Below, in pieces: positions 35,827 through 49,683 of a stretch of 64,000 nt of DNA; position 1 is the first letter of the stretch; each line of letters begins with the position of its first letter. The position numbers and the translations under genes were made by a program. The DNA comes from Malacoraja senta (taxonomy: Eukaryota), in assembly GCA_038087875.1 (NCBI GenBank), contig CM075982.1, forward strand, positions 30,504,001 to 30,568,000, in the 5' to 3' direction. Below the pieces are notes generated by a model, which made no database searches, had not been told where the DNA came from, and saw nothing but the letters and a program-made list of their open reading frames with translations.

Positions 35827-38800
35827 CTGTCCACCAGTGTGCATACTTGCAGGATTCGTTATGCTCCCCAGACGTCGTCTATGTGGTACACATCCTAAAT
35901 ATTCATGGTCATATTTGTGTCCAGCACTGATGCAACTTGATAGCACAAGGAAAGGCCTGGTGACAATCCAATATCTCTAAAAAAGATGCAGTGTGCTGGT
36001 CGGGCAGCGTCTCTGGAGAACATGGATAGACAACATTTGGGTCGGGACCCTTCCTCAGACTTGGGGCTGATGAAGGTCCCGACCCGAAACTTTCATAAGT
36101 TATATGAGCAGAGTTAGGCCATTCGGCCCATCAAGTCTACCCCGCCATTCAATCATGTCTGATCTATCTTTCCCTCTCAACCCCATTCTCCTGCCTTCTC
36201 CACATAATCTTTGATGCCCTTACTAATCAAACCCCTGTTAATCTCTGCTTTGAAAATACCTAATGAAGGCCTCCACAGCTGTCTGTGGCAATAATTCCAC
36301 AGATTGAACACATTCTGACGAAGAATTCTTCCTCATCTTTCTACAGGTATGTCCTTTTACTCTGAGGTTATGCCCCCTGGTCCTAGACTGTCCCACAAGT
36401 GCAAACATCCTCTCCACATCCATTCTATCAGTACTTTCATTATTCAGTGCCTCTCCCATGTTATCCTGAGTTGCTGTCCGACCGGCTGAGTTACTCCAGC
36501 ACTATGACTCTTCTTTAGGAATCCAATCTTTGCAGTGCCTTGTTTCTATAGCTATTATCTACCTCATTGGTGACCCTCGGACTATCCTTGATCAGACTTT
36601 GCTGGCTTTACCTTGCACTAAGCATTATTCACTTATCATGGATAGGTCAAGTTTGGAGGCAGGTGGGACTGGTGTAGCTGGGACATGTTGTCTGATATGG
36701 GCCAGTTGGGCCGAAGGGTCTGTTTTCACACTGTATCACTCTATGACTATGTATCTATACACTGTAAATGCATTGATTGTAATCATGTATTGTCTGCTAA
36801 CTTGTTAGCACGCAACAAAAACGTTGCATTGTACCATTGTACAAGTGACAATAAACTAAACTGAAACTGAACTATAAACAAATATACCTTCTATGTTAAC
36901 ACTGGTACACAGTTTTTTTTATTATGTTTGCTTATTGAACCTAATAGAGAAATAGATACAAAACAATAACGTCAGCAAATGTTGTTTGAGGTTTAAAAAA
37001 GTAATGGGCATTTTTTCAGTGCAATAAATACTTGATGCTCAATAAATGCTATTAGTAGTTCTGGACAATGTACAAACGTTTGGAGCTTATAGACATGATA
37101 ATAATATCTAACATCAACAGCAGCTTATTTTTCAACAAGGCAAAGACATTGAAATGAATCACAGGGATAGTGGCAGGCCAATTCTTAGATTTCATGTGAA
37201 ATGCTTCCTCCCATTCTGATAAGAATGTCACATTTGGAATGCTGGGCAGATACATTTTATAACTCCATCCAGATGTGTATGAGGCATATAGGGGGGTTGC
37301 ACGTAAGGTCACTGGGTCATAGGGCTTGACGCACTGAGTCGCTCAATCCATCTGGAGGACATCCGTAACTTCCGGAATATGTTATTAATGCAAGAAACGC
37401 ACTTTACTACCTGTTAAAAACCGCCAAAATGTTGAATTTTTGCGCTGTAAAAAATTGTGGAATTCGGGGTAAGTGTGAGAGACATGTACCCAACTTCAGA
37501 ATTCCAAAAGTGAAGCGAAATGAAGGTAAAGAGAAGCGAGAGCTGAAGGGACAACAGCAGCTAAAGTGCTTGGCGAACATTGGCCGTGCAGATTTCGGAA
37601 TTGAAAATATTGGGAATTATCGCGTTTGCTCACTGTATTTCATCAACAGTAAGGCATTATTTGGGGGTTTTCTTGATTCCTTTGGTAAATAAAAACTCAG
37701 AAGTGATAAATCTGGTTGTAAATTTTGCTTCAGAGGCATTTTCTTTTTGTATGTAAAAACCCACTTGAGAACCAGGGGCGAGTTTTAAATTTTACAGCCA
37801 GATTTATCCCTTCTGAAACTTTTTAGATGCCAAAGGAATCAAGAAAAAACACAAATAATGCCTTAGTTGATGAAATGCAGTGAGCAAACGGCCAATGTTC
37901 GCCAAGCACTTTGGCTGTTGTTGTCCCTTCAGCTCTCGCTTCTATCTACCGTCATTTCTCCTCACTTTTTTAATTCTGAAGTAGGCTAAATGTCTCTCAC
38001 GCTTATCCCGATTTCCATAATTATTTACAGCGCAAAATTTGACAATTTCGGCGGGTTTTAACGGGCCCGCTACGCTGGAAACAATGGTAAGTGCTTACCT
38101 GCAGTTCATCGCATGTAATCCATTTGGTGTAGCGTAGCGAAAGTACGGGTCATGGGTCGTGACCCGACTGCCGTGAAACCTCCCTATAGTAAATAATGAG
38201 AATCTTTTCACCTTAGCAAAGGCATCTATACCTAGGTAAGGAGACGATTTGGAGTGGACCTTTTAATCTGAAATGCATTGTTCAGTTTAGTTTAGAAACA
38301 GCACGGAAACAGGCCCTTTAATTTAGATACAGCGCGGAAACTGAGTCCGCACGGACCAGCGACCCCTGCACATTAACACTACCCTTCATACGAGGGACAT
38401 TTTAAAAAACATTTATACCAAGCCAATTAACCTACAAACCTGTACGTCTTTGGAGAGTGGGAGGAACATATAAAACTATAAAAGGACTGGACAAGCTAGA
38501 TGCAGGAAAAATGTTCCCAATGTTGGGCGAGTCCAGAACCAGGGGCCACAGTCTTAGAATAAAGGGGAGACCAGAGGTGAGAAAAAACTTTTTCACCCAG
38601 AGAGTTGTGAATTTGTGGAATTCCCTGCCACAGAGGGCAGTGGAGGCCAAATCACTGGATGGATTTAAGAGAGTTAGAGCTCTAGGGGCTAGTGGAATCA
38701 AGGGATATGGGGAGAAGGCAGGCATGGGTTTTATTGATTGGGGATGATCAGCCATGATCACAATGAATGGCGGTGCTGGCTCGAAGGGCCGAATGGCCTC

Positions 38801-39193
38801 CTCCTGCACCTATTTTCTATGTTGCTATGTTTCTATGAAACCAAAGATCTTGGGGAAAAAACCCACGCAGGTCACAGGGAGAACGTACAAACTCTGTACG
38901 GACAAGCACCCGTAGTCAGGATCGAACCCGAGTCTCTGGCGCTGTAAGGCAGTAGTTCTGCTGCTGGATCACTCATGTCCCGAAAGGTTTTTAAGGAAAC
39001 AGGTATGCTTTGTCTAAATGCACTACTTACATTCAGTTAAATACAAACGGCGTTTCACAACACAATAATAAGTGCAGTTAACAACTTTAGTAGAATTTGG
39101 TTGTGAAGTATGCCACTAAGTATGCCAGTTATTTTCGTTTCCACATCAACGATAAATCATCACAAAAATATCTAGTACAGGTCCATCATTGAC
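35827..39193. repeat. Older segmental duplication, copy A (with extra TE insertions)
   Basis: Colinear with 47247-49407 from ctgtccacc to ccatcattgac; noticeably more diverged than the 13-kb pair. Confidence 0.9.
37290..38185 (-). mobile_element. Non-autonomous ISL2EU-type transposon, inverted relative to 32590-33445
   Basis: AT TSD (37288-37289 and 38186-38187); THAP ORF 37429..37692 (MLNFCAVKNCG...YRVCSLYF); the empty site is visible in copy B near 48721. Confidence 0.8.
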
Positions 39194-39214
39194 TTTGCAG
39201 CAACTGTGTTCCGG

Positions 39215-39465
39215 GCAGCACAGTGGCACAGTGGTAGTTGCTGACTTACAGCCCCACAAACCCAGGTTTGATCCTAACTGCGGGTGCTATCAGCATGGAG
39301 TTTACATGTTTTCTCTGTGATCTCATGGGCTTTCCCCTCGTTCCCCCGTTTCCTCCCACATTCCAAAGAATGAGAGTTTGTAGGGTAATTGGCCTCTGCA
39401 AATTGTTCCTAGTGTCTGTAGGATAGAACTAGTGTATGGGCGATCGTTGGTCGGCGCGGACTCAG
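39215..39465 (+). mobile_element. HE1-like V-SINE split by the Gypsy insertion (continues at 47191-47245)
   Basis: gcggactcag|...|ctcagtgggccgaagggcc rejoins into the normal SINE tail. Confidence 0.88.
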
Positions 39466-39669
39466 TGTAAAGAAGCTTTAACAAGACATCGTTACTTTAC
39501 TATCTTTATTCATACTGGAGCATTACATATTGCACTAGCTGTACGTGGTCTGTCACAGGAACTAGAGAGCGATCTGTCGGTGGGGAGGTTGTAGTTATAC
39601 TTGTGATATGGGGAGTGGTTAGTAGGTATGAGGTCACTATGTTAAAGGCACATGCATATATCATCTACA
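39466..39669 (-). repeat. Gypsy 3' LTR
   Basis: 204 bp, 2 mismatches to 46987-47190; preceded on the minus strand by the PPT aaggggaagga (39670-39680). Confidence 0.95.
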
Positions 39670-39722
39670 TCCTTCCCCTTCGAAACGACAGGCAAATACA
39701 ATAGTGACAGGGCAACCACGGC

Positions 39723-40403
39723 TCATGCGCTAGGACAGTTAAACAAAATCGCCATAGCGGACAGGCGGTTTGACAAGACGTCCCGACCGGGTTCGCATCT
39801 CGCCATCCTCCCTTCCGGCAGGAAGAAGAGGCACCGATGGGGGCAGAGGCGCGGCAGCAGGTGGCAGGACCTGTCATGGGAACGCTTTTGGACATCGTGC
39901 CTGAAGGCAATGCGTTTCTGAACCGCCGCAGGCGTGAGGACAGAGGGTATGAGGGAGCGCTGGGCCACAGGGAGAGGGAGTCTGGTAGCGCGAGACATGA
40001 GCCGCTGAGCAGGGGAACCCATGGCAGAGTCGCGGGAAATGTTGCGGAGGTTGAGGAGGGCCAGATAGAAATCGGAGTTAATGCCACCACATTGTTCCAG
40101 CAGGTTCTTCGCACTGCGGACGGCACGCTCGGCCAGACCGTTGCTTTGCGGGTACTCCGGGCTGCTGGTGAAATGGTGGAAGTTCCACCTGGAAGCGAAA
40201 GCTTTAAACTCGGAGCTCGTAAACTGGCTGCCATTGTCCGACTGCAGGCTTGCCGGGGGGCCAAAAGTGCCAAAATGAGGGTATAACCTGTCGATGATGG
40301 CCGAAGAGGTTAGGGAGTGCAGCCGGTCGACCACAAACCAGCTGGAGTAGGAGTCAACGAGAACCAGGAAGTGTTTGCCTCACCACTCGAAAATGTCGAT
40401 GGC
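39723..40403 (-). pseudogene. Gypsy integrase core
   Basis: AIDIFEW...LQSDNGSQF...SSPEYPQSNGLAERAV contains the D,D,E residues. Confidence 0.92.
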
Positions 40404-43400
40404 AAGTCAAGTCAAGTCAAGTCAAGTGAGTTTATTGTCATGTGTCCCTGGTAGGACAATGAAATTCTTGCTTTGCTTGAGCACAACAGAACATAGTAGG
40501 CATTTACTACAAGGCATTCTATAAATATATACACAATGGTCAATATACTGATAAAGTGCAAATAACAGTATTGGCTAGTAAAGTTCAGTGTTATGTCCGA
40601 GCCAGGTTTAATAGCCTGATGGCTGTGGGGAAGTAGCTGTTCCTGAACCTGGTCGTTGCAGTCTTCAGGCTCCTGTACCTTCTACCTGAAGGTAGTAGGG
40701 AGATGAGTGTGTGGCCAGGATGGTGTGGGTCCTTGATGATGCTGCCAGCCTTTTTGAGGCAGCGACTGTGGTAGATCCCCTCGATGGAAGGGAGGTCAGA
40801 GCCGATGATGGACTGGGCAGTGTTTACTACTTTTTTGTAGTCTTTTCCTCTCCAGGGCACTCAAGTTGCCGAACCAAGCCACGATGCAACCGGTCAGCAT
40901 GCTCTCTACTGTGCACCTGTAGAAGTTAGAGAGAGTCCTCCTTGACAAACCGACTCTCCGTAATCTTCTCAGGAAGTAGAGGCGCTGATGTGCTTTCTTA
41001 ATAATGGCATCATTGTTCTCGGACCAGGAAAGATCTTCAGAGATGTGCACGCCCAGGAATTTGAAGCTCTTGACCCTTTCAACCATCGTCCCGTTGATAT
41101 AAATGGGACTGTGGGTCCCCATCCTACTCCTTCCAAAGTCCACAATCAGTTCCTTGGTTTTGCTGGTGGTTGAGGGCCAGGTTGTTGTGCTGGCACCATA
41201 TGGACAGTTGCTCGATCTCTCTTCTATACTCTGACTCATCCCCATCAGTGATACGTCCCACAACAGTGGTGTCATCAGCGAACTTGATGATGGCGTTCGC
41301 ACTATGTCTGGCTACGCAGTCATGAGTATAGAGTGAGTACAGCAGGGGACTGAGCACGCAGCCTTGAGGTGCTCCCGTGCTAATTGTTATCGAGTCTGAC
41401 ACATTTCCACCAATACGAACAGACTGTGGTCTGAGTGTGAGGAAGTCGAGGATCCAATTGCAGAGGGATGCGCAGAGACCCAGTTCTGCGAGTTTGGTAA
41501 CCAGCTTGGAGGGGATGATTGTGTTAAATGCCGAGCTGTAATCGATGAATAACAGCCTGACATATGAGTTTTTGTTGTCCAAGTGGTCCAGAGCGGAGTG
41601 GAGGGCCAGCGAGATCGCATCCACCGTTGATCTGTTGTGGCGGTAAGCGAACTGCAGTGGGTCCAGGTTTTTGTCGAGGTAGGAGTTGATCTGCGTCATG
41701 ATCAACCTCTCAAAGCACTTCATCACCACAGGCGTTAGTGCCACAGGTCGATAGTCATTGAGGCACGTCACCTTACTCTTCTTGGGCACTGGTATAATTG
41801 ATGCCCTTTTGAAGCAGGTGGGGACCTCAGACCTCAGAAGTGAGAGGTTGAAAATGTCCGTAAAAACTCCAGCCAGTTGGTCCGCACAGGTTTTAGAACG
41901 CGACCAGGTATACCATCAGGTCCAGGCGCTTTTCGAGGGTTCACCCCTCTGAAGGATTTCCTGACGTCGGCCTCTGTGACTGAGACTGAAATACCATCAC
42001 AGCGAATGGGGGCTCGGCAAGGCACATCGGTGTTCTCCCTATCAAAGCGTGCGTAAAACGCATTGAGCTCATCAGGGAGTGATGTTTCGCCGACATTCGA
42101 GCTGCCTCCTGATTTCGACTTGTAAGAGGTGATTGCATTCAGGCCCTGCCACAGCCTCCGAACATCTGTCTCTTCCTCCAGTTTGGAGCAGAAGTCCCTT
42201 TTGGCCTTTTTTATGGCCTTACCAAGGTCATATCTGGACTCCTTGTAGGCCACTGTATCATCAGACATGAATGCCCGGTGTCTGGACTTCAGAAGAGTGC
42301 GGATCTCAAAGTTCATCCAAGGTTTCTGATTGGGAAACGCTCGGAAGGTTTTGGTGGGGATGCAGTCCTCCACACACTTCTTAATGAAGTCTGTAACGAC
42401 TGTGGCGTATTCGTTCAGGTCCGTTGCCGAGTCCTTGAACATTGCCCAGTCTACAGACTCCAAACAGTCCTGGAGTTGTTCCTCTGCCCCCCCCGACCAG
42501 CTCTGTACTGTCCTCACCTCTGGGGGTGCACTCTTTAATTGCTGCCTGTAGGCAGGAAGAAGCAGCACCGCGGTATGGTCGGATTTACCGAAGTGAGGGC
42601 GAGGGATAGAGCGATAGGCATTCTTGATGGTGGTGTAGCAGTGGTCGAGGGTGTTTGGTCCTCTGGTGCAGCAGGAGACATGTTGGTGGAAGTTAGGGAG
42701 TGATTTCTTTAGGTTTGCCTTATTGAAGTCCCCGGCTATGGTGGTAAACGCCTCGGGGTAAGACGTCTGGTGTTTGTTGACCATGGCGTGCAGCTCCCCC
42801 AGTGCCAGACGGACGTCTGCCTGGGGTGGGATGTAGACCGCGGTCAGGATGATGGAGGTGAATTCCCTCGGAAGGTAGAAGGGACGACACTTCACCGCCA
42901 GATGTTCGAGGTGTGGAGAGCAGGAGTTGGACAGGACTGCCACGTCTGAGCACCACGCAGAGTTGACCATGAGGCAGACGCCCCCTCCTCTCCCTTTCCC
43001 AGATGCCAGTGTACGGTCCATACGATGGATGGAGAACCCTTCAGGCTGGACCGCTGAATCTGGGGAGCTGGGGGTGAGCCATGTCTCTGTGAAACAGAAC
43101 ACAGAGCATTCCCTCAGCTCCCTTTGATAAAGCAGTCTTGCCCTTAAGTCCTCCACTTTATTTTCAAGGGACTGTACGTTGGCCAGTAGGATAGTAGGGA
43201 GAGGGGGCCGAAGTCCCCTGCGCTTCAGTCTGACCTGAAGTCCTGCCCGTCGGCCACGTTTCCGGACACAATGGAGACTTCCCCTTTGTTTCCAGGTGCT
43301 GAGTTTCCTGTACCTGCTGTTTCTGCGGACCTGCGCTGGAACGGGGATTCCTTCACAGACGGCAGCTCCAGCTCCGTAACGAACGGGGGTACCTTCAAAG

Positions 43401-43722
43401 TCGGCAGCTCCAGCTCCGTTGTTCCTGGGAGATCCGGCCCGTGGGCTCTGCAGGTCATCCCGGGGTTCCCAGGTACAGGACCTGGGATCCTCAATCTGGT
43501 CGGGAGTTCTGCAGCCAGCGTGGGAAAGTTTAAAGTCCAGGGCTCCCGCAGCTGCGGGAGATCGCGAAATTGCCAGCGCTTTCAGCTTGTCTGAAACGGC
43601 ACCGATTACTGCCGTTTCCCTGATGCAGGTGAGTTGATAGAAGTTGTAGGTGAACCTTTTCTGTTCTGGTGCTCCGCAAAAGTCGCCGCAGGCAGGCGCC
43701 ATCTTGGGTTGCCCTGGACGGT
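40404..43722 (-). mobile_element. Full-length Rex1/Babar-clade LINE (APE and RT) with three 1-nt frameshifts
   Basis: LANVQSL...FTETWL...AGDFN (APE); [10 protein letters not shown]...LDPLQFAY...[11 protein letters not shown]...KFADDTT (RT); 5' caagATGgcg; (ACTTG)5 tail at 40403-40427. Confidence 0.93.
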
Positions 43723-45346
43723 AACCGCCATCCAGGGCAGTTCGGGCGCGGGCTGCTGCAGAAGCGGCTGGCGCTGCTGGTGGGGGGCGAGTCTGTTGCA
43801 GGTGGAACACGAGGAGACCCTCTCCCGGATGTATTTGGCCATACCCGGCCAATAGAACTGGCTCCGGGCGAGAGACACGGTGGCATCGGCCCCAGGATGT
43901 CCGCGGTGAGCGACCTGAAAATAGTGGTCGTGCAGCGCAGCGGGCACGACCACCTTGTGACCCTTCACCACCACGCCGTCGTGTAGTACGAGCTCATCAC
44001 GGACCAGGAAGTAGGGCACGGCGCCAGCCGGCAGCGCGGAACGACGGTCGGGCCAGCCCCGCTGGATGACGGCAGAAAGCTGTTGCAGGGCAGGGTCATT
44101 GGTAGTGTGTTCAACCAGGGACTTCATCTGCTGTGAAGGGACGATGTTCACTTGGAGCACCATTAGATCAGACATCTCATAGGGGTGGCGAACGGTGGAC
44201 GTTAGCGGGGCGCGAGACAACGTGTCGGCCACGAACATGTCCTTGCCCTTACGATAAACCACATTGAACGTGAAGCGTTGGAGCTGCAGCATCATGCGCT
44301 GCAGGCGTGATGAGGCGGCATGGATCGACTTGCTGAGAATGGTGACAAGCGGCTGGTGGTCAGTTTCAATAGTGAAAGTGTTGCCCAGGATGTAGTCTTT
44401 GAATTTGGAGCAGGCAAACAGCACGCCCAGTAGCTCCTTCTCGATCTGCGCGTAGTGCTGTTCAGTGGAGGTCATGGTGCGGGATGCGAAGGAGACAGGC
44501 AGCTGTAGGCCGTCATGGACCTGGAGACAGGCGGCACCGAGTCCGAACTGAGAGGCGTCGCAGGTGAGGACAATGGGACGCTGCAGGTCAAAAAACTTGA
44601 GTGTGGGGGTGCTGATTAGCTTGGATTTAAGGATGTCGAATGCTTCCTGGTGGTGGGGGAACCAAGCCCAGGACGTGTCCTTTTTTATCAAATCCCTCAG
44701 GGGAGCGCTGAGCTCGCTGAGGTCGGGGATGAACTTCCCCAGGTAGTTTACCATGCCCAGGAAGCGTTGTAGGCCTGCCACATTAGTAGGAGGAGGCATC
44801 CCGGAAATGGCAGCCGTTTTCTGCGGGTCTGGTTTTAACCCCTCGGCGGTGAATACATGTCCAACATAGGTGACCTCCGGGACGCGAAATCGGCACTTCT
44901 TGAGGTTCAGTTTCAAGTTGATTTCCCGGGCCCGGAGGTTGACATCGTGTTCGGCAACGTCCTTACCGTAAACGAGGATGTCGTCAACGATGATGGCGCG
45001 TGGTCGATCTGAAAACAGCTGCTCCATTGTCCGTTGGAATACCTCGCTGGCAGAGTTGATTCCGAATGGCATTCGGAGAAACCGAAATCTGCCGAATGGG
45101 GTGGCAAAAGTTGTCAAAATGGACGACTGCTCGTCAAGTGGTATTTGCCAGAAGGAGCTTTTGGCATCGAGGACAGAAAAAACCGTTGCCGGACCAACCT
45201 GTGCAGCGACTTCTTCTACCGTTCTCATAGGGTAGTGCGGGCGTCTAATGGCCAGGTTGAGGTCTTTGGGGTTGATGCAGATGCGTATCTCGCTCTTGTC
45301 CTTTTTCGCGGCAACAACCATGGTAGAGACCCACCTGGGGGGGTCG
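43723..45346 (-). pseudogene. Gypsy RT, RNase H and integrase zinc-finger region
   Basis: WVSTMVV...RICINPKDLN...LDAKSSFWQ...RMPFGI...IVDDILVYG; CDASQFGLG...YAQIEKELL...TDHQPL; HRGHPG...CSTC. Confidence 0.95.
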
Positions 45347-45358
45347 ATGACCACCTTT

Positions 45359-46818
45359 TATTTATTTATTTATTTTAAATTTTATTAGAAGTAAGTACAA
45401 TTGTATACAATCATATTTTCATAATACCTTTCATGTACAGCTTCTTATTTTAAAAAAATTTTGAAATAAAGAAGAAAAAGAAAAAAAGTTAGATAATGAA
45501 AAATAGAAAAATGTGAGATATATAGTGTGTGAAAAAGAAAAATAAAGAATGAAATAAGAAAGTTGAGACATGGAAAATAGAAAAGAGAGAATAAAAGAAA
45601 AGATGAGAAGAAAAGAAAATAGAAGGAGATCATTTATAATCTTGACCATCCGCAGTCACGGATTAGCTTTTACACCTGTTTTGCACCATACGTTTCCAAA
45701 AAGACGACAAATGGAGACCAACTCGTTATGAATTGGTCAAATTTATCTATTAGGAGGAATCGCATTTCCTCAAGATGTGCGGTATCCAACATACTTGCAA
45801 TCCACATTTTGAGCGTTGGTATTGGTGTATTTTTCCAAAATTTCAATAATAATTTTTTTGCTATTATTAAACCATAATTAAAAATTGACTTTTCCCATGT
45901 AGCCTTCGTAATTTTTATCAATAATTCCCGTTCCCACTCTTCTCTAATTACCTCGGTCACAGGTAAATCTATATTTAAGATACTATTATATAAATATGCT
46001 ATTAATTTTTGTGTATCAGCTTTTATATTCATTACTTCTTCTAGTAAATCAGGAGTTATTTTTTGATATCCCTGTATGTATGTCTTCAAAAAATTACAAA
46101 TCTGAAAATATTTAAAATAATGAGTGTTTTTCAGTTTACATTTTAATTGTAATTGTTGAAATGATAATAAAGCTCCCATTTCATACATATCCCCGATCCT
46201 TTTAATTCCTAAACTTTCCCATTGATTATATATTTTATCCATCATAGATGGTTTAAATAAAGGATTATTCGCTATCGGTGTTAACAATGATAGGTTTCTT
46301 AATTTTAAGGATAGTTTTATTTGTTTCCATATTCTTATTGTTTCTTGTATAATTGGGTTTTTCTTATATATTGTATTGTTCATTTTTTTAACAATCCTCT
46401 TTCTCCATTTTTATCCATTCTGTCTGTTGAGTTGAACTATCCAACCAGTAAATTATATTCTTAATATGTATTGCCCAATAGTAATACAAAAAATTAGGGA
46501 GTGAAAGTCCCCCGACATCTTTTGGTTTACATAAGTGTTCTTTTTTAATTCCATGTGATTTGTAATCCCAAACAAAATTAGTAATATTAGCGTTCAGTTT
46601 AGAAAAAAAATATTTTGGTACATATACTGGTATAGATTGAAATAAGTATAATAACTGTGGTAAGAAGCTCATTTTAATAGCATTTATTCTGCCTATTAAT
46701 GATAAAGGGAGTGTTTTCCAAAATTTTATCATTATATTAAGTTTATTTATTAAGGGTATAAAATTAGCATTGAATAAAGCTTTATGTTTTCTAGTAATCT
46801 GTATACCCAGATATTTGA
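45359..46818 (-). mobile_element. 5'-truncated L1-clade LINE
   Basis: FKYLGIQ...LPLSLIGRINAIKM...GGLSLPNF.YYYWA; (aaat)n tail; 12-bp TSD atgacc(a/g)ccttt at 45347-45358 and 46819-46830. Confidence 0.9.
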
Positions 46819-46954
46819 ATGACCGCCTTTAGGATGCCCATTTTTACCATACTGTGTAGTGTCGACTCCACTTTGGCCTTCATGGCAAAGGAGACACGGT
46901 GAGTTCGATTGACCACTGGATCGACCTTACGGTCCACTACAATCTTGTAGCTGC

Positions 46955-46986
46955 AGGCGTGGGTTCGTATCCCACTTCTGACACCA
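46955..46986 (-). other. tRNA-Leu primer-binding site extended to 32 nt
   Basis: Plus strand aggcgtgggttcgtatcccacttctgacacca matches the 3' end of vertebrate tRNA-Leu(CAA/CAG) including CCA; the canonical 18-nt PBS is 46969-46986. Confidence 0.9.
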
Positions 46987-47190
46987 TGTAAAGAAGCTTT
47001 AACAAGACATCGTTACTTTACTATCTTTATTCATACTGGAGCATTACATATTGCACTAGCTGTACGTGGTCTGTCACAGGAACTAGTGAGCGATCTGTGG
47101 GTGGGGAGGTTGTAGTTATACTTGTGATATGGGGAGTGGTTAGTAGGTATGAGGTCACTATGTTAAAGGCACATGCATATATCATCTACA
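46987..47190 (-). repeat. Gypsy 5' LTR
   Basis: 204 bp, TG...CA, directly abutting the PBS. Confidence 0.95.
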
Positions 47191-47246
47191 CTCAGTGGGC
47201 CGAAGGGCCTGTTTCCACGCTGTAGCTCTAAACTATACTATCTAAA

Positions 47247-49407
47247 CTGTCCACCCGTGTGCATACTTGGAGGATTCGTTATGCACCCGACCTCGTCTAT
47301 GTGATACACATCCTAAAAAGTCATGGTCATATTTGTGTCCAGCACTGATGCAACTTGATATCATAAGGAAAGGCCTGGTGACAATCCAATATCTCTAAAA
47401 ATGATGCAGAGTGCTGGAGGAGCTCAGCAGGTCGGGCAACATCTCTGGAGAACATGGATACACAATGTTTTTGTCAGAATCCTTCTTCAGACTCGGGTCT
47501 GAAGATCCCAACCCAAAATGTTCACGTCATAGGAGTAGAATTAGGCCATTCGGCCCATTGTATCTACTCCACCATTCGACAATGGCTGATGTCTTTCCCT
47601 CTCAATCCCATTCTCTTGCCTTCTCCCCTGACATCCTTACTAATCAAGAAAATGTGAATCTCTGCTTTAAAAATACCTGACCTCCCCAGTTGCCTGTGGC
47701 AATGAATTCCACAAATTCACCACCCTCTGGTAAAGAATGTCCTCATCTCCTTTCTAAAAGGTACGTCCTTTTATTGTGAGGCAATGCCACCTGGTCCTAG
47801 ACTATCCCACTGGGTGCAAACATCCCCTCCATCTCCACTCTATCCAGTCCTTTCATTATTCAGTACCTCTCCACGTTCTCCTGAGTTGCTGTCTGACCCG
47901 CAGTTACTCCAGCACTCTGTGTCTTCTTTTGTAAACCAATCTCTGCAGTGCCTTGTTTCTATAACTATTATCTACCTCTTTGGTGACCCTCGGACTATCC
48001 TTTATCGGACTTTGCTGGCTTTACCTTGCAGTAAACATTATTCCCTTATCATGTATCCATACACTGTAAATGCATTGATTGTAATCGCGTATTGTCTTCC
48101 TGCTGGCTGGTTAGCACGCAACTACAGCTTTTCACTGTACCTCGGTACACGTGACAAAAAACTAAACTGAAGCTGAACTATAAACAAATATACCTTCCAT
48201 GTTAATACTGGTTAAACTGCAGCTGACTCCCAAGGAATTATTACCAAAAGGATATTAAAATATCTTGACATACAACACATCAATGGAAACATTGCAAGCA
48301 CATTTGTCAGCACTTTCAGAGAAAAAATATTGATTTTTATACACTCATGTTTTTTATTATGTTTGCTTATTGAACCTAATAGAGAAATAGATACAAAACA
48401 CAATAACGTCAGCAAATGTTGTTTGAGGTTTAAAAAAGTAATGAACATTTTTTCAGTGCAATAAATATTTGAAGCTCAATAAATGCTATTAGTAGTTCTG
48501 GACAATGTACAAACGTTTGGAGCTTATAGACATGATAATAATATCTAACATCAACAGCAGCTTATTTTTCAACAAGGCAAAGACATTGAAATGAATCACT
48601 GGGATACTGGCAGGCCAATTCTTTGATTTCATGTGAAATGCTTCCTCCCATTCTGATAAGACAGTCTCATTTGGAATTCTTGGCAGAGGTACGCTTTATA
48701 AGTCCAGATGTATACGAGGCATCGATATAGTAAATAATGAGAAACTTTGCACCTCAGCAACTGCATCCATACCCAGGTAAGGAGAAGATTTGGAGTGGAC
48801 CTTTTAATTAGAAGGTGGTTGAAATTTGGAATGCATTGTTTAGTTTAGTTTAGAGAAACAGCGCAGAAACAGGCCCTTCGGCCCACAGAGTCCGTACCGA
48901 CCAGCGATCCCCGCACATTAACACTGCCCTTCACACACAAGGGACAATTTGTTTACATTGATACAAAGCCAATTAACCTACAAACCTGTACGTTCTTTGA
49001 AGAGTGGGAGGAAACCAAAGATCTTGGAGAAAACCCATGCAGGTCACGGGGAGAACATACAAACTTTGTAGGGACAAGCACCCATAGTGAGGAACTAACC
49101 CGGGTCTCTGGCGCTGTAAGGCAATAACGTTGTGCCACTGTGCAACTCATGTCACGAAAGTTTTTTTAGGAAACAGGTACACTTTGTCTAAATGCATCAG
49201 TTGGATCACTACTTACAATCAGTTAAATGCAAACGGTGTTTCACAACACAATAATAAGTGCAGTTAACAACTTTTAGCAGAATTTAATTGACCAAAGTCC
49301 TTTGGAACATCCTCTGGTTATGAAATGTGTCACGAAACAAAGTTATGTTCGTTTCCACATCAACGATAAATCATCACAAAAATATCTAGTACAGGTCCAT
49401 CATTGAC
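47247..49407. repeat. Older segmental duplication, copy B (EXO5 3' flank or UTR)
   Basis: Colinear with 35827-39193; lacks the ISL2EU and CR1 insertions. Confidence 0.9.
48353..48358 (-). terminator. Candidate EXO5 poly(A) signal
   Basis: AATAAA on the minus strand about 1.3 kb past the stop; duplicated at 36918-36923. Confidence 0.35.
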
Positions 49408-49683
49408 CTTCAGGTCGAGACCCTTCTTCAGACCCGAAACATCACCCATTCCTTCTCTCCAGAGATGCTGCCCGACCCGCTGAGTTACTCCAGCATTTTG
49501 TGTCTACCTTCGATCTAAACCAGCATCTGCAGTTCCTTCCAACAGATGTGTAGGTTAATTGGCATGATATAAGTGTAAATAGTCCCTAATGTAGGATAGT
49601 ACTAGAGATCGTGGATCGCGCGCGGGTGGGTGCGGACTCGGTGGGCCAAAGTGCCTGTTTCCGCGCTGTAGGTCTAAACTAAA

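Follow-up and report, generated by a model that had tools for sequence, protein, structure and literature searches.

An LTR retrotransposon read on the minus strand

The DNA considered here is a stretch of 64,000 nucleotides from Malacoraja senta, referred to throughout as the window. From 39466 to 47190, on the minus strand, it carries what is confirmed as an integrated copy of a Ty3/gypsy-type (Metaviridae) LTR retrotransposon. The coordinates given in a preliminary description of the locus all hold, with the correction that the element reads on the minus strand; its features are accordingly described below in that direction. Self-comparison and alignment delimit two direct repeats of 204 bp (46987-47190 and 39466-39669) that have TG...CA ends and differ at 2 positions (99% identity). 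The 5' LTR, which contains an AATAAA, runs from 47190 to 46987, and the 3' LTR runs from 39669 to 39466. Just outside lie identical 5-nt copies of CTGAG, upstream at 47195 to 47191 and downstream at 39465 to 39461, which agrees with the target duplication of 4 to 6 bp that is expected of Ty3/gypsy elements along with direct LTRs ending in TG...CA. The two priming sites are in place as well, a primer-binding site (PBS) beside the 5' LTR and the polypurine tract GAAGGGGAAGGA (39681 to 39670) adjoining the 3' LTR.

Between the LTRs, the pol domains follow the order RT, RNase H, integrase (Pfam: RVT_1, RT_RNaseH, Integrase_H2C2, and rve), as in Ty3/gypsy. An open frame at 43725-45357 on the minus strand encodes RT, RNase H, and the zinc-binding domain of integrase (RVT_1, RT_RNaseH, RT_RNaseH_2, and Integrase_H2C2), while the integrase core and C terminus, with a match to rve, occupy 39682-40402 of the same strand and have an in-frame TGA near their start (..FEW*GKHFLVLVDSY..). 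In a protein search, the closest annotated relatives of this pol, at 59% identity, are the K02A2.6-like gypsy pol proteins of teleosts. The closest of the Logan contigs, P0010 (L001), is 80% identical and spans RNase H and integrase only. Two others, L002 and L003 (68%), carry a related gag-protease-RT region, on contigs without an LTR or a PBS. The family of the 204-bp LTR itself is present in high copy in the contigs of one of the organisms used for comparison, organism G.

The preliminary description had credited the copy with an open RT-RNase H-integrase frame. That claim is refuted by two LINE insertions and the in-frame TGA in integrase. The first insertion, at 45358-46818 on the minus strand, is a LINE truncated at its 5' end; it carries an A-rich (AAAT)n tail, is flanked by a target duplication of 11 bp (AAGGYGGTCAT), and separates the first 45 residues of RT from the remainder of that domain. 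The second, at 40403-43724 on the minus strand, is a CR1-like LINE with endonuclease and RT ORFs and an (ACTTG)n tail, and it lies inside integrase. Both LINEs were inserted in the LTR element's own orientation. Given these two insertions, the TGA, and the 1% difference between the LTRs, the insertion is not young.

The surroundings of the retrotransposon are themselves repetitive. It is flanked by direct repeats at 35827-39196 and 47247-49410 that are 2 to 3.4 kb long, 78 to 93% alike, and collinear with gaps, and which lay ~320 bp apart before the retrotransposon was inserted. They may have arisen by tandem duplication, or each may be a copy of some other repeat. The alternative of a much longer LTR, taking in these 2- to 3-kb repeats, was considered and rejected, as they stand in the wrong order with respect to the 204-bp repeat and the CTGAG target duplication directly abuts the 204-bp LTRs. 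The insertion target, 47190-47245, is a short repeat whose abundance is extreme in each of the four organisms compared (summed word depth, 10^6 to 10^7) and is often found in inverted or tandem joints.

The primer-binding site and the joint with pol

The 18 nt of the PBS, TGGTGTCAGAAGTGGGAT (46986 to 46969, minus strand), are the complement of positions 59 to 76 of tRNA-Leu(CAA), CCA included; the match is exact, occurs a single time in the 64,000-nt window, and equals the 3' end of true tRNA-Leu(CAA) genes. Complementarity does not stop there. Past the PBS, 13 of the next 14 letters also match the tRNA-Leu(CAA) complement, for which the computed chance at a fixed place (at least 13 matches in 14) is 1.6e-7, and the sole mismatch falls opposite tRNA position 58. 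At this site, 46968, the element has A in its own sense (T on the plus strand) where a faithful copy would have T, which amounts to a change of A to T in the sense of the tRNA. The 13 letters beyond it, CGAACCCACGCCT (46967 to 46955, minus strand), correspond to the T arm, position 48, and the start of the variable-arm stem. The preliminary description, which had proposed an 18-nt PBS followed by 14 more tRNA-Leu-complementary nucleotides with one change at A58, is therefore borne out in this respect.

Might T58 simply be what the genomic tRNA-Leu genes encode, the possibility against which the preliminary description had set its reading? As a reference, metagenome contigs were scanned for a 31-nt word in which the position-58 site was left free, which gave 39 loci. 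Five loci, all in metazoan DNA, are genuine tRNA-Leu(CAA) genes that contain an intron (Rfam tRNA), and every one of these metagenome-derived genes has A58. Rfam is the relevant tool in this case, since it detects the intron-bearing tRNA-Leu genes that ARAGORN misses. A mark is thus present at the modified base that normally stops the polymerase, with T at 46968 against A58 in true genes; that the base is methylated in Malacoraja senta is presumed. Among the metagenome material was also a metazoan contig, L004:1-3996, filed there with ~13 tRNA matches that include an intron-bearing tRNA-Leu(CAA), together with a signal recognition particle RNA gene (Rfam, 203.7 bits).

The point at which the tRNA match ends can be fixed by comparison. 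Contigs of related organisms extend the tRNA part upstream of 46955 as ...TTCTGGTCTCCAATTGG, which gives the local variable arm. Since the relatives' tRNA copy continues as ...CCAATTGGAGACCAGAA, the last matching letter in the window is the one at 46955, the second of the variable-arm stem. Because the stretch includes the complement of CCA, is in register with the PBS, and is contiguous with U5, the extra 14 nt, judging by these letters, could only have been copied from the mature primer tRNA, and no other origin would appear possible. A tRNA gene or a SINE fragment was tried as a source and rejected: either would be expected to have the 5' half of the tRNA, with internal promoter boxes, and to lack CCA, whereas here CCA is present and the 5' half is absent.

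What follows the tRNA letters is RT. From 46954, the frame CSYKIVVDRKVDPVV... aligns with residues 1 to 41 of the RT ORF of the related element L002 (E 1e-9). On the minus strand, 46819-46954 encodes the opening ~45 residues of RT (CSYKIVVDRKVDPVV...GILKAVI) before the first LINE interrupts them. RT therefore begins 32 nt past the LTR, and neither gag nor protease lies between the two; a Pfam search of the element gave no match to either. Direct entry into the start of RT with no gag or protease, as originally described, is accordingly upheld by both the L002 alignment and the lack of either domain in the element. In L002, a gag zinc knuckle and a DTG protease stand directly upstream of the homologous RT start. 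Since gag and protease are absent here while the relatives (L002 and the intact-type contigs) have both, the element is, going by its domain content, a deleted, non-autonomous member of Ty3/gypsy.

How do intact relatives read at the position of the joint? In organism G, four Logan contigs match the pol side up to 46957, after which they have other letters, and these translate as GKLP-CSYK. Contigs of a second organism, H, depart from the window after 46955 to 46957 and translate, in the RT frame, as RFDDELGKLP-CSYK. With GKLP or RFDDELGKLP standing before CSYK, intact-type relatives have coding sequence upstream of the point at which the window switches to tRNA. At the nucleotide level the relatives run ...GGCAAACTGCC-CTGCAGC across the joint, and the letters CCT are common to the tRNA copy. 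CCT thus forms a microhomology at 46955-46957 (minus strand) in which the tRNA copy equals the pol sequence of intact relatives in the organism G version; it is 3 nt long against that version and 1 nt long against that of organism H. Among the contigs of related organisms that were aligned to the window, no public one was shown to span the exact LTR-tRNA-RT joint, so the joint is read from the Malacoraja senta assembly alone.

Long tRNA copies in related organisms and in metagenomes

The comparison data from related organisms are low-coverage Logan contigs, in which unique joints and copy numbers are unreadable (the raw-read run, X25, amounts to 3 reads). Five unitigs of organism G with a window-type LTR end stop exactly at 46969, as a graph branch at the end of the 18-nt site would give, and one 111-nt contig (X23 record 17) follows the LTR and the PBS to 46968 and then differs for 30 nt. 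Both observations suggest, indirectly, that there may be sister copies without the tRNA extension.

Long copies of the primer are nevertheless plentiful in these genomes. Organisms A, G, and H have very abundant tRNA-Leu(CAA) copies of ~50 nt that run to tRNA position 38, one short of G37, and a copy end beside position 37 fits the known minor strong stop at modified base 37 (PMC13191261). These abundant copies are mostly found on LTR ends unlike that of the window, differing from it right after TGT, behind 46989. In the contigs of organisms G and A, no T-to-A variant at 46968 reaches 5%, and so the abundant copies share the T58 form. Why should they do so? The polymerase may strongly prefer dA opposite m1A58, or the copies may go back to few founders; the latter explanation keeps alive an origin of the window's copy in two steps, which is weighed below. 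In one organism H contig, the U5 end is repeated after a tRNA-Leu copy of the abundant type.

The metagenome scan extends the comparison to other hosts. In about 34 of the 39 loci, between 31 and 57 nt of tRNA-Leu complement come after an LTR-type end (...ACA). At the free position-58 site, 30 of the 34 have the faithful T and 4, from three families, have A; neither G nor C occurs. Read-through thus need not leave a mark at 58, as the 30 copies with the faithful base indicate. Several of these loci resemble the window's element in their architecture. L009 has a 31-nt copy, with A at the position-58 site, that is joined to the middle of protease (in its second half) and is followed by RT, RNase H, and integrase, the RT being 50% identical to that of the window's element. 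In L032, which has its own LTR pair, a 57-nt copy is joined to the gag zinc knuckle. In L011/L017, a 49-nt copy, again with A at the position-58 site, is followed by the integrase core only. L025 (251-6301, minus strand of the locus) is of another kind, an intact copia-type element with an LTR pair and a 2017-aa gag-pol ORF whose match to tRNA-Leu is 34 nt long and not 18. Within three LTR families, the same LTR is found with differing copy lengths and joints (five, three, and two variants), and this variety within one family fits recurrent, independent errors and not a fixed long PBS. In viral contigs, neither the LTR-PBS word nor the 31-nt tRNA word was found.

A further group of loci consists of a single LTR, a tRNA-Leu copy of 36 to 50 nt, and a repeat of the U5 end (L016, L020, L021, L022, L026, L007, L029, L024, L038, L028, and L010). 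In these units the last 4 to 33 nt of U5 are repeated after the tRNA copy, unrelated DNA follows, and there is no second LTR within 7 to 12 kb. Some have flanks that resemble target duplications of 4 to 5 bp, namely, CCGT/CCGT in L016, CATA/CATA in L021, CAGAG/CTGAG in L007, and GTATT/GAATT in L038. L010 has two tandem tRNA copies with TACA between them. The single-LTR units could have originated from over-long strong-stop DNA that slipped back onto U5 and, in that form, became integrated.

Origin of the joint and comparison with known systems

In the normal course of replication, plus-strand strong-stop DNA is made by copying U3, R, and U5 and then the first 18 nt of the tRNA primer, with synthesis halting at N1-methyladenosine 58 (m1A58). 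The product ends one letter before m1A58 (PMC8599865; PMC11251516). The modification is needed for the strong stop, and read-through DNA is noncomplementary after transfer (PMC8599865). Minor strong stops have been described at tRNA positions 55, 54, and 37 (PMC13191261). The pattern of misincorporation at m1A depends on the 3' neighbor, the C signal being low where that neighbor is A (PMC4787781), and the change of A to T (tRNA sense) at 58 fits the pattern for m1A followed by A. The premise of the preliminary description, that m1A58 is normally a stop and causes misincorporation when bypassed, thus has the support of published work (PMC8599865; PMC4787781).

How, then, might the joint in the window have come about? 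The reading that we favor, and that we think is probably correct, is that read-through of m1A58 and transfer of the over-long product into pol made the deletion joint in one step. The polymerase would have passed m1A58, putting in dA instead of dT, and would then have continued along tRNA-Leu(CAA) through the T arm and into the variable arm, where it would have stalled after two letters of the stem. The resulting 3' end, being over-long, could no longer have paired at the PBS. It may instead have found a partner in the minus-strand DNA at the protease/RT boundary, to which it could pair by CCT/AGG, and have been extended from there, in which case leader, gag, and protease would have been lost by an error of reverse transcription. 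The product, made up of LTR, PBS, 14 tRNA letters, RT-RNase H-integrase, polypurine tract, and LTR, is what the sequence shows; it was integrated with its 5-bp target duplication, to be struck after integration by the two LINEs and a nonsense mutation. The error could date from the replication cycle of which this insertion is the product, or it could go back to a recent ancestor, later copied by means of proteins that other elements supplied.

The same read-through had been put forward in the preliminary description as a one-step deletion of gag and protease. Several parts of that proposal stand: the tRNA copy is in register, the change falls at m1A58, CCT provides a microhomology, and L009, L032, and L011 show the same architecture. 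That the course ran in a single step is likely and not proven. In favor of it, the LTR pair, target duplication, PBS, polypurine tract, and pol domains are all present around the joint. Against it, the single substitution may be an ordinary mutation, the LTRs being 1% apart and the prior of hitting position 58 being ~1/14, and a 3-nt microhomology is weak when taken alone and shrinks to 1 nt in the organism H version.

The most serious competitor, which we consider rather unlikely while taking it seriously, divides the events into two. An ancestor would have propagated with a tRNA-Leu copy of ~50 nt in the T58 form, and leader, gag, and protease would have been deleted later, the left end of the deletion falling inside the copy; template switching while the minus strand was being made could account for such a deletion, as could microhomology-mediated end joining in the chromosome. 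In its favor, many copies in contigs of three organisms run past 46955 as ...CCAATTGGAGACCAGAA to tRNA position 38, with no T-to-A variant at 5% or above at 46968. The intact copia-type element L025, with its 34-nt match, means that autonomous elements can carry extended sites, and a 3-nt microhomology is compatible with any of the deletion routes. Most of these long copies, however, sit on LTR ends that part from the window's immediately past TGT, whereas unitigs with the window-type LTR branch exactly at the end of the 18-nt site. A random deletion would also have to end inside a target of 32 nt, where read-through puts it by definition. Finally, copy length and joint vary together within single LTR families, as events in one step predict.

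A second alternative leaves the read-through in place and concerns the base at 46968. The T would be a point mutation that followed integration, or an inherited replication error, and the polymerase would have read through an unmethylated primer and copied it faithfully. We judge this to be improbable. The copy has aged, as its LTRs differ at 2 of 204 sites, and the 30 of 34 analogous copies with the faithful base indicate that read-through without a mark is common. Yet at 1% divergence only ~0.3 mutations are expected in 32 nt, and just 1 in 14 to 1 in 32 of them would hit position 58. Moreover, where the metagenome copies depart from the faithful base at this site, at four loci belonging to three families, they always do so by A to T (tRNA sense). 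That substitution also prevails among the abundant copies of organisms G and A, and its direction fits the published m1A signature (PMC4787781). As this alternative touches only the sub-claim about position 58, the likelihoods that we attach to the various readings are not meant to sum to one.

The last alternative, that a tRNA pseudogene, part of a tRNA-derived SINE, or an assembly chimera has placed the 32-nt stretch between LTR and pol by accident, draws on a region rich in SINEs and LINEs and on the fact that no public contig has been shown across the joint, but we judge it to be highly improbable, given that the stretch opens with the complement of the mature-tRNA CCA exactly at the terminal CA of the LTR, that it holds the 3' 32 nt only, with ARAGORN (blind to intron-bearing tRNA-Leu genes) calling no tRNA in the window, that a matching 3' LTR, a polypurine tract, and a target duplication are in place, and that the same layout recurs in unrelated contigs.

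If read-through of m1A58 with transfer into pol is the origin of the joint, what does the copy add? The steps of plus-strand transfer and the stop at m1A58 are known from biochemistry and cell culture, and natural products of their failure have rarely been pointed out. The Malacoraja senta copy would preserve such a product, completed and integrated in the germ line, with a base change at the methylated position and a joint that can still be read. Together with its analogues in other hosts, it suggests that an autonomous LTR element can become defective in one simple step and that past states of tRNA modification might be read from genome sequence alone. A broader generalization can be put forward only tentatively, since we lean somewhat against it: that, throughout the animals, read-through of the primer tRNA by plus-strand strong-stop DNA frequently and generally gives rise to structurally variant LTR retrotransposons. 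Were it true, the variants would be of three kinds: (i) gag-less or pol-truncated copies, (ii) autonomous elements with a lengthened PBS, and (iii) single-LTR insertions made up of an LTR, a tRNA copy, and a short repeat of the U5 end, with target duplications. Genomes would then keep a record of tRNA modification, in the form of the substitution at m1A58 and of copy ends beside G37. The recurrence, the single-LTR units with tRNA copies, and the modification marks would all gain weight if a genome-wide census confirmed them. In the literature searched, of which coverage was partial, no description was found of natural retrotransposon copies with such a joint and a mark at position 58.

The locus is a natural example of an error class known from retrovirus work and not a new mechanism. 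The nearest parallel is the over-long plus-strand strong-stop DNA of retroviruses, as made by HIV-1 with m1A58-deficient tRNA-Lys3. There too, the primer tRNA is copied past position 58 and the product is noncomplementary to the minus strand. Near position 37 comes another block, and it is at position 38 that the abundant copies of the related genomes end. The retroviral molecules, however, are products of biochemical and cell culture work and are reported to be dead ends for integration, whereas the Malacoraja senta copy was completed, integrated in the germ line, and kept, shows a probable misincorporation at position 58, and belongs to a Ty3/gypsy element primed by tRNA-Leu(CAA).

A second parallel lies in deletions that arise during reverse transcription. 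Pulsinelli and Temin (1991, J Virol 65:4786) reportedly observed that strand-transfer errors produced large deletions within a single cycle in spleen necrosis virus vectors in culture. The likeness is that of an internal deletion made in reverse transcription by a misplaced strand transfer at short homologies; the difference is that those were cultured vectors and the Malacoraja senta element is a natural genomic copy. Captured tRNAs provide a third. A tRNA has been found between the LTRs of a circle (Colicelli and Goff 1986), tRNA-Gly cDNA has been found beside deleted HIV proviruses (PMC12220202), and hairpin-induced, tRNA-mediated recombination is known in HIV-1. All of these cases share with the present one the joining of reverse-transcribed mature tRNA to viral DNA, and deletions. 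They involve other tRNAs, acting as spurious primers or templates, between the LTRs or at the 3' end, while here it is the element's own primer that has been copied, in register with the PBS.

The final comparison is with the non-autonomous LTR elements, such as LARD and TRIM elements and gag-defective families. Like the Malacoraja senta copy, these have LTRs, a PBS, a polypurine tract, and an incomplete set of proteins. They are amplified families, however, and most have neither coding capacity nor a known founding lesion. The Malacoraja senta element, known here from one copy, has kept pol and lost gag and protease, and its founding lesion is still visible.
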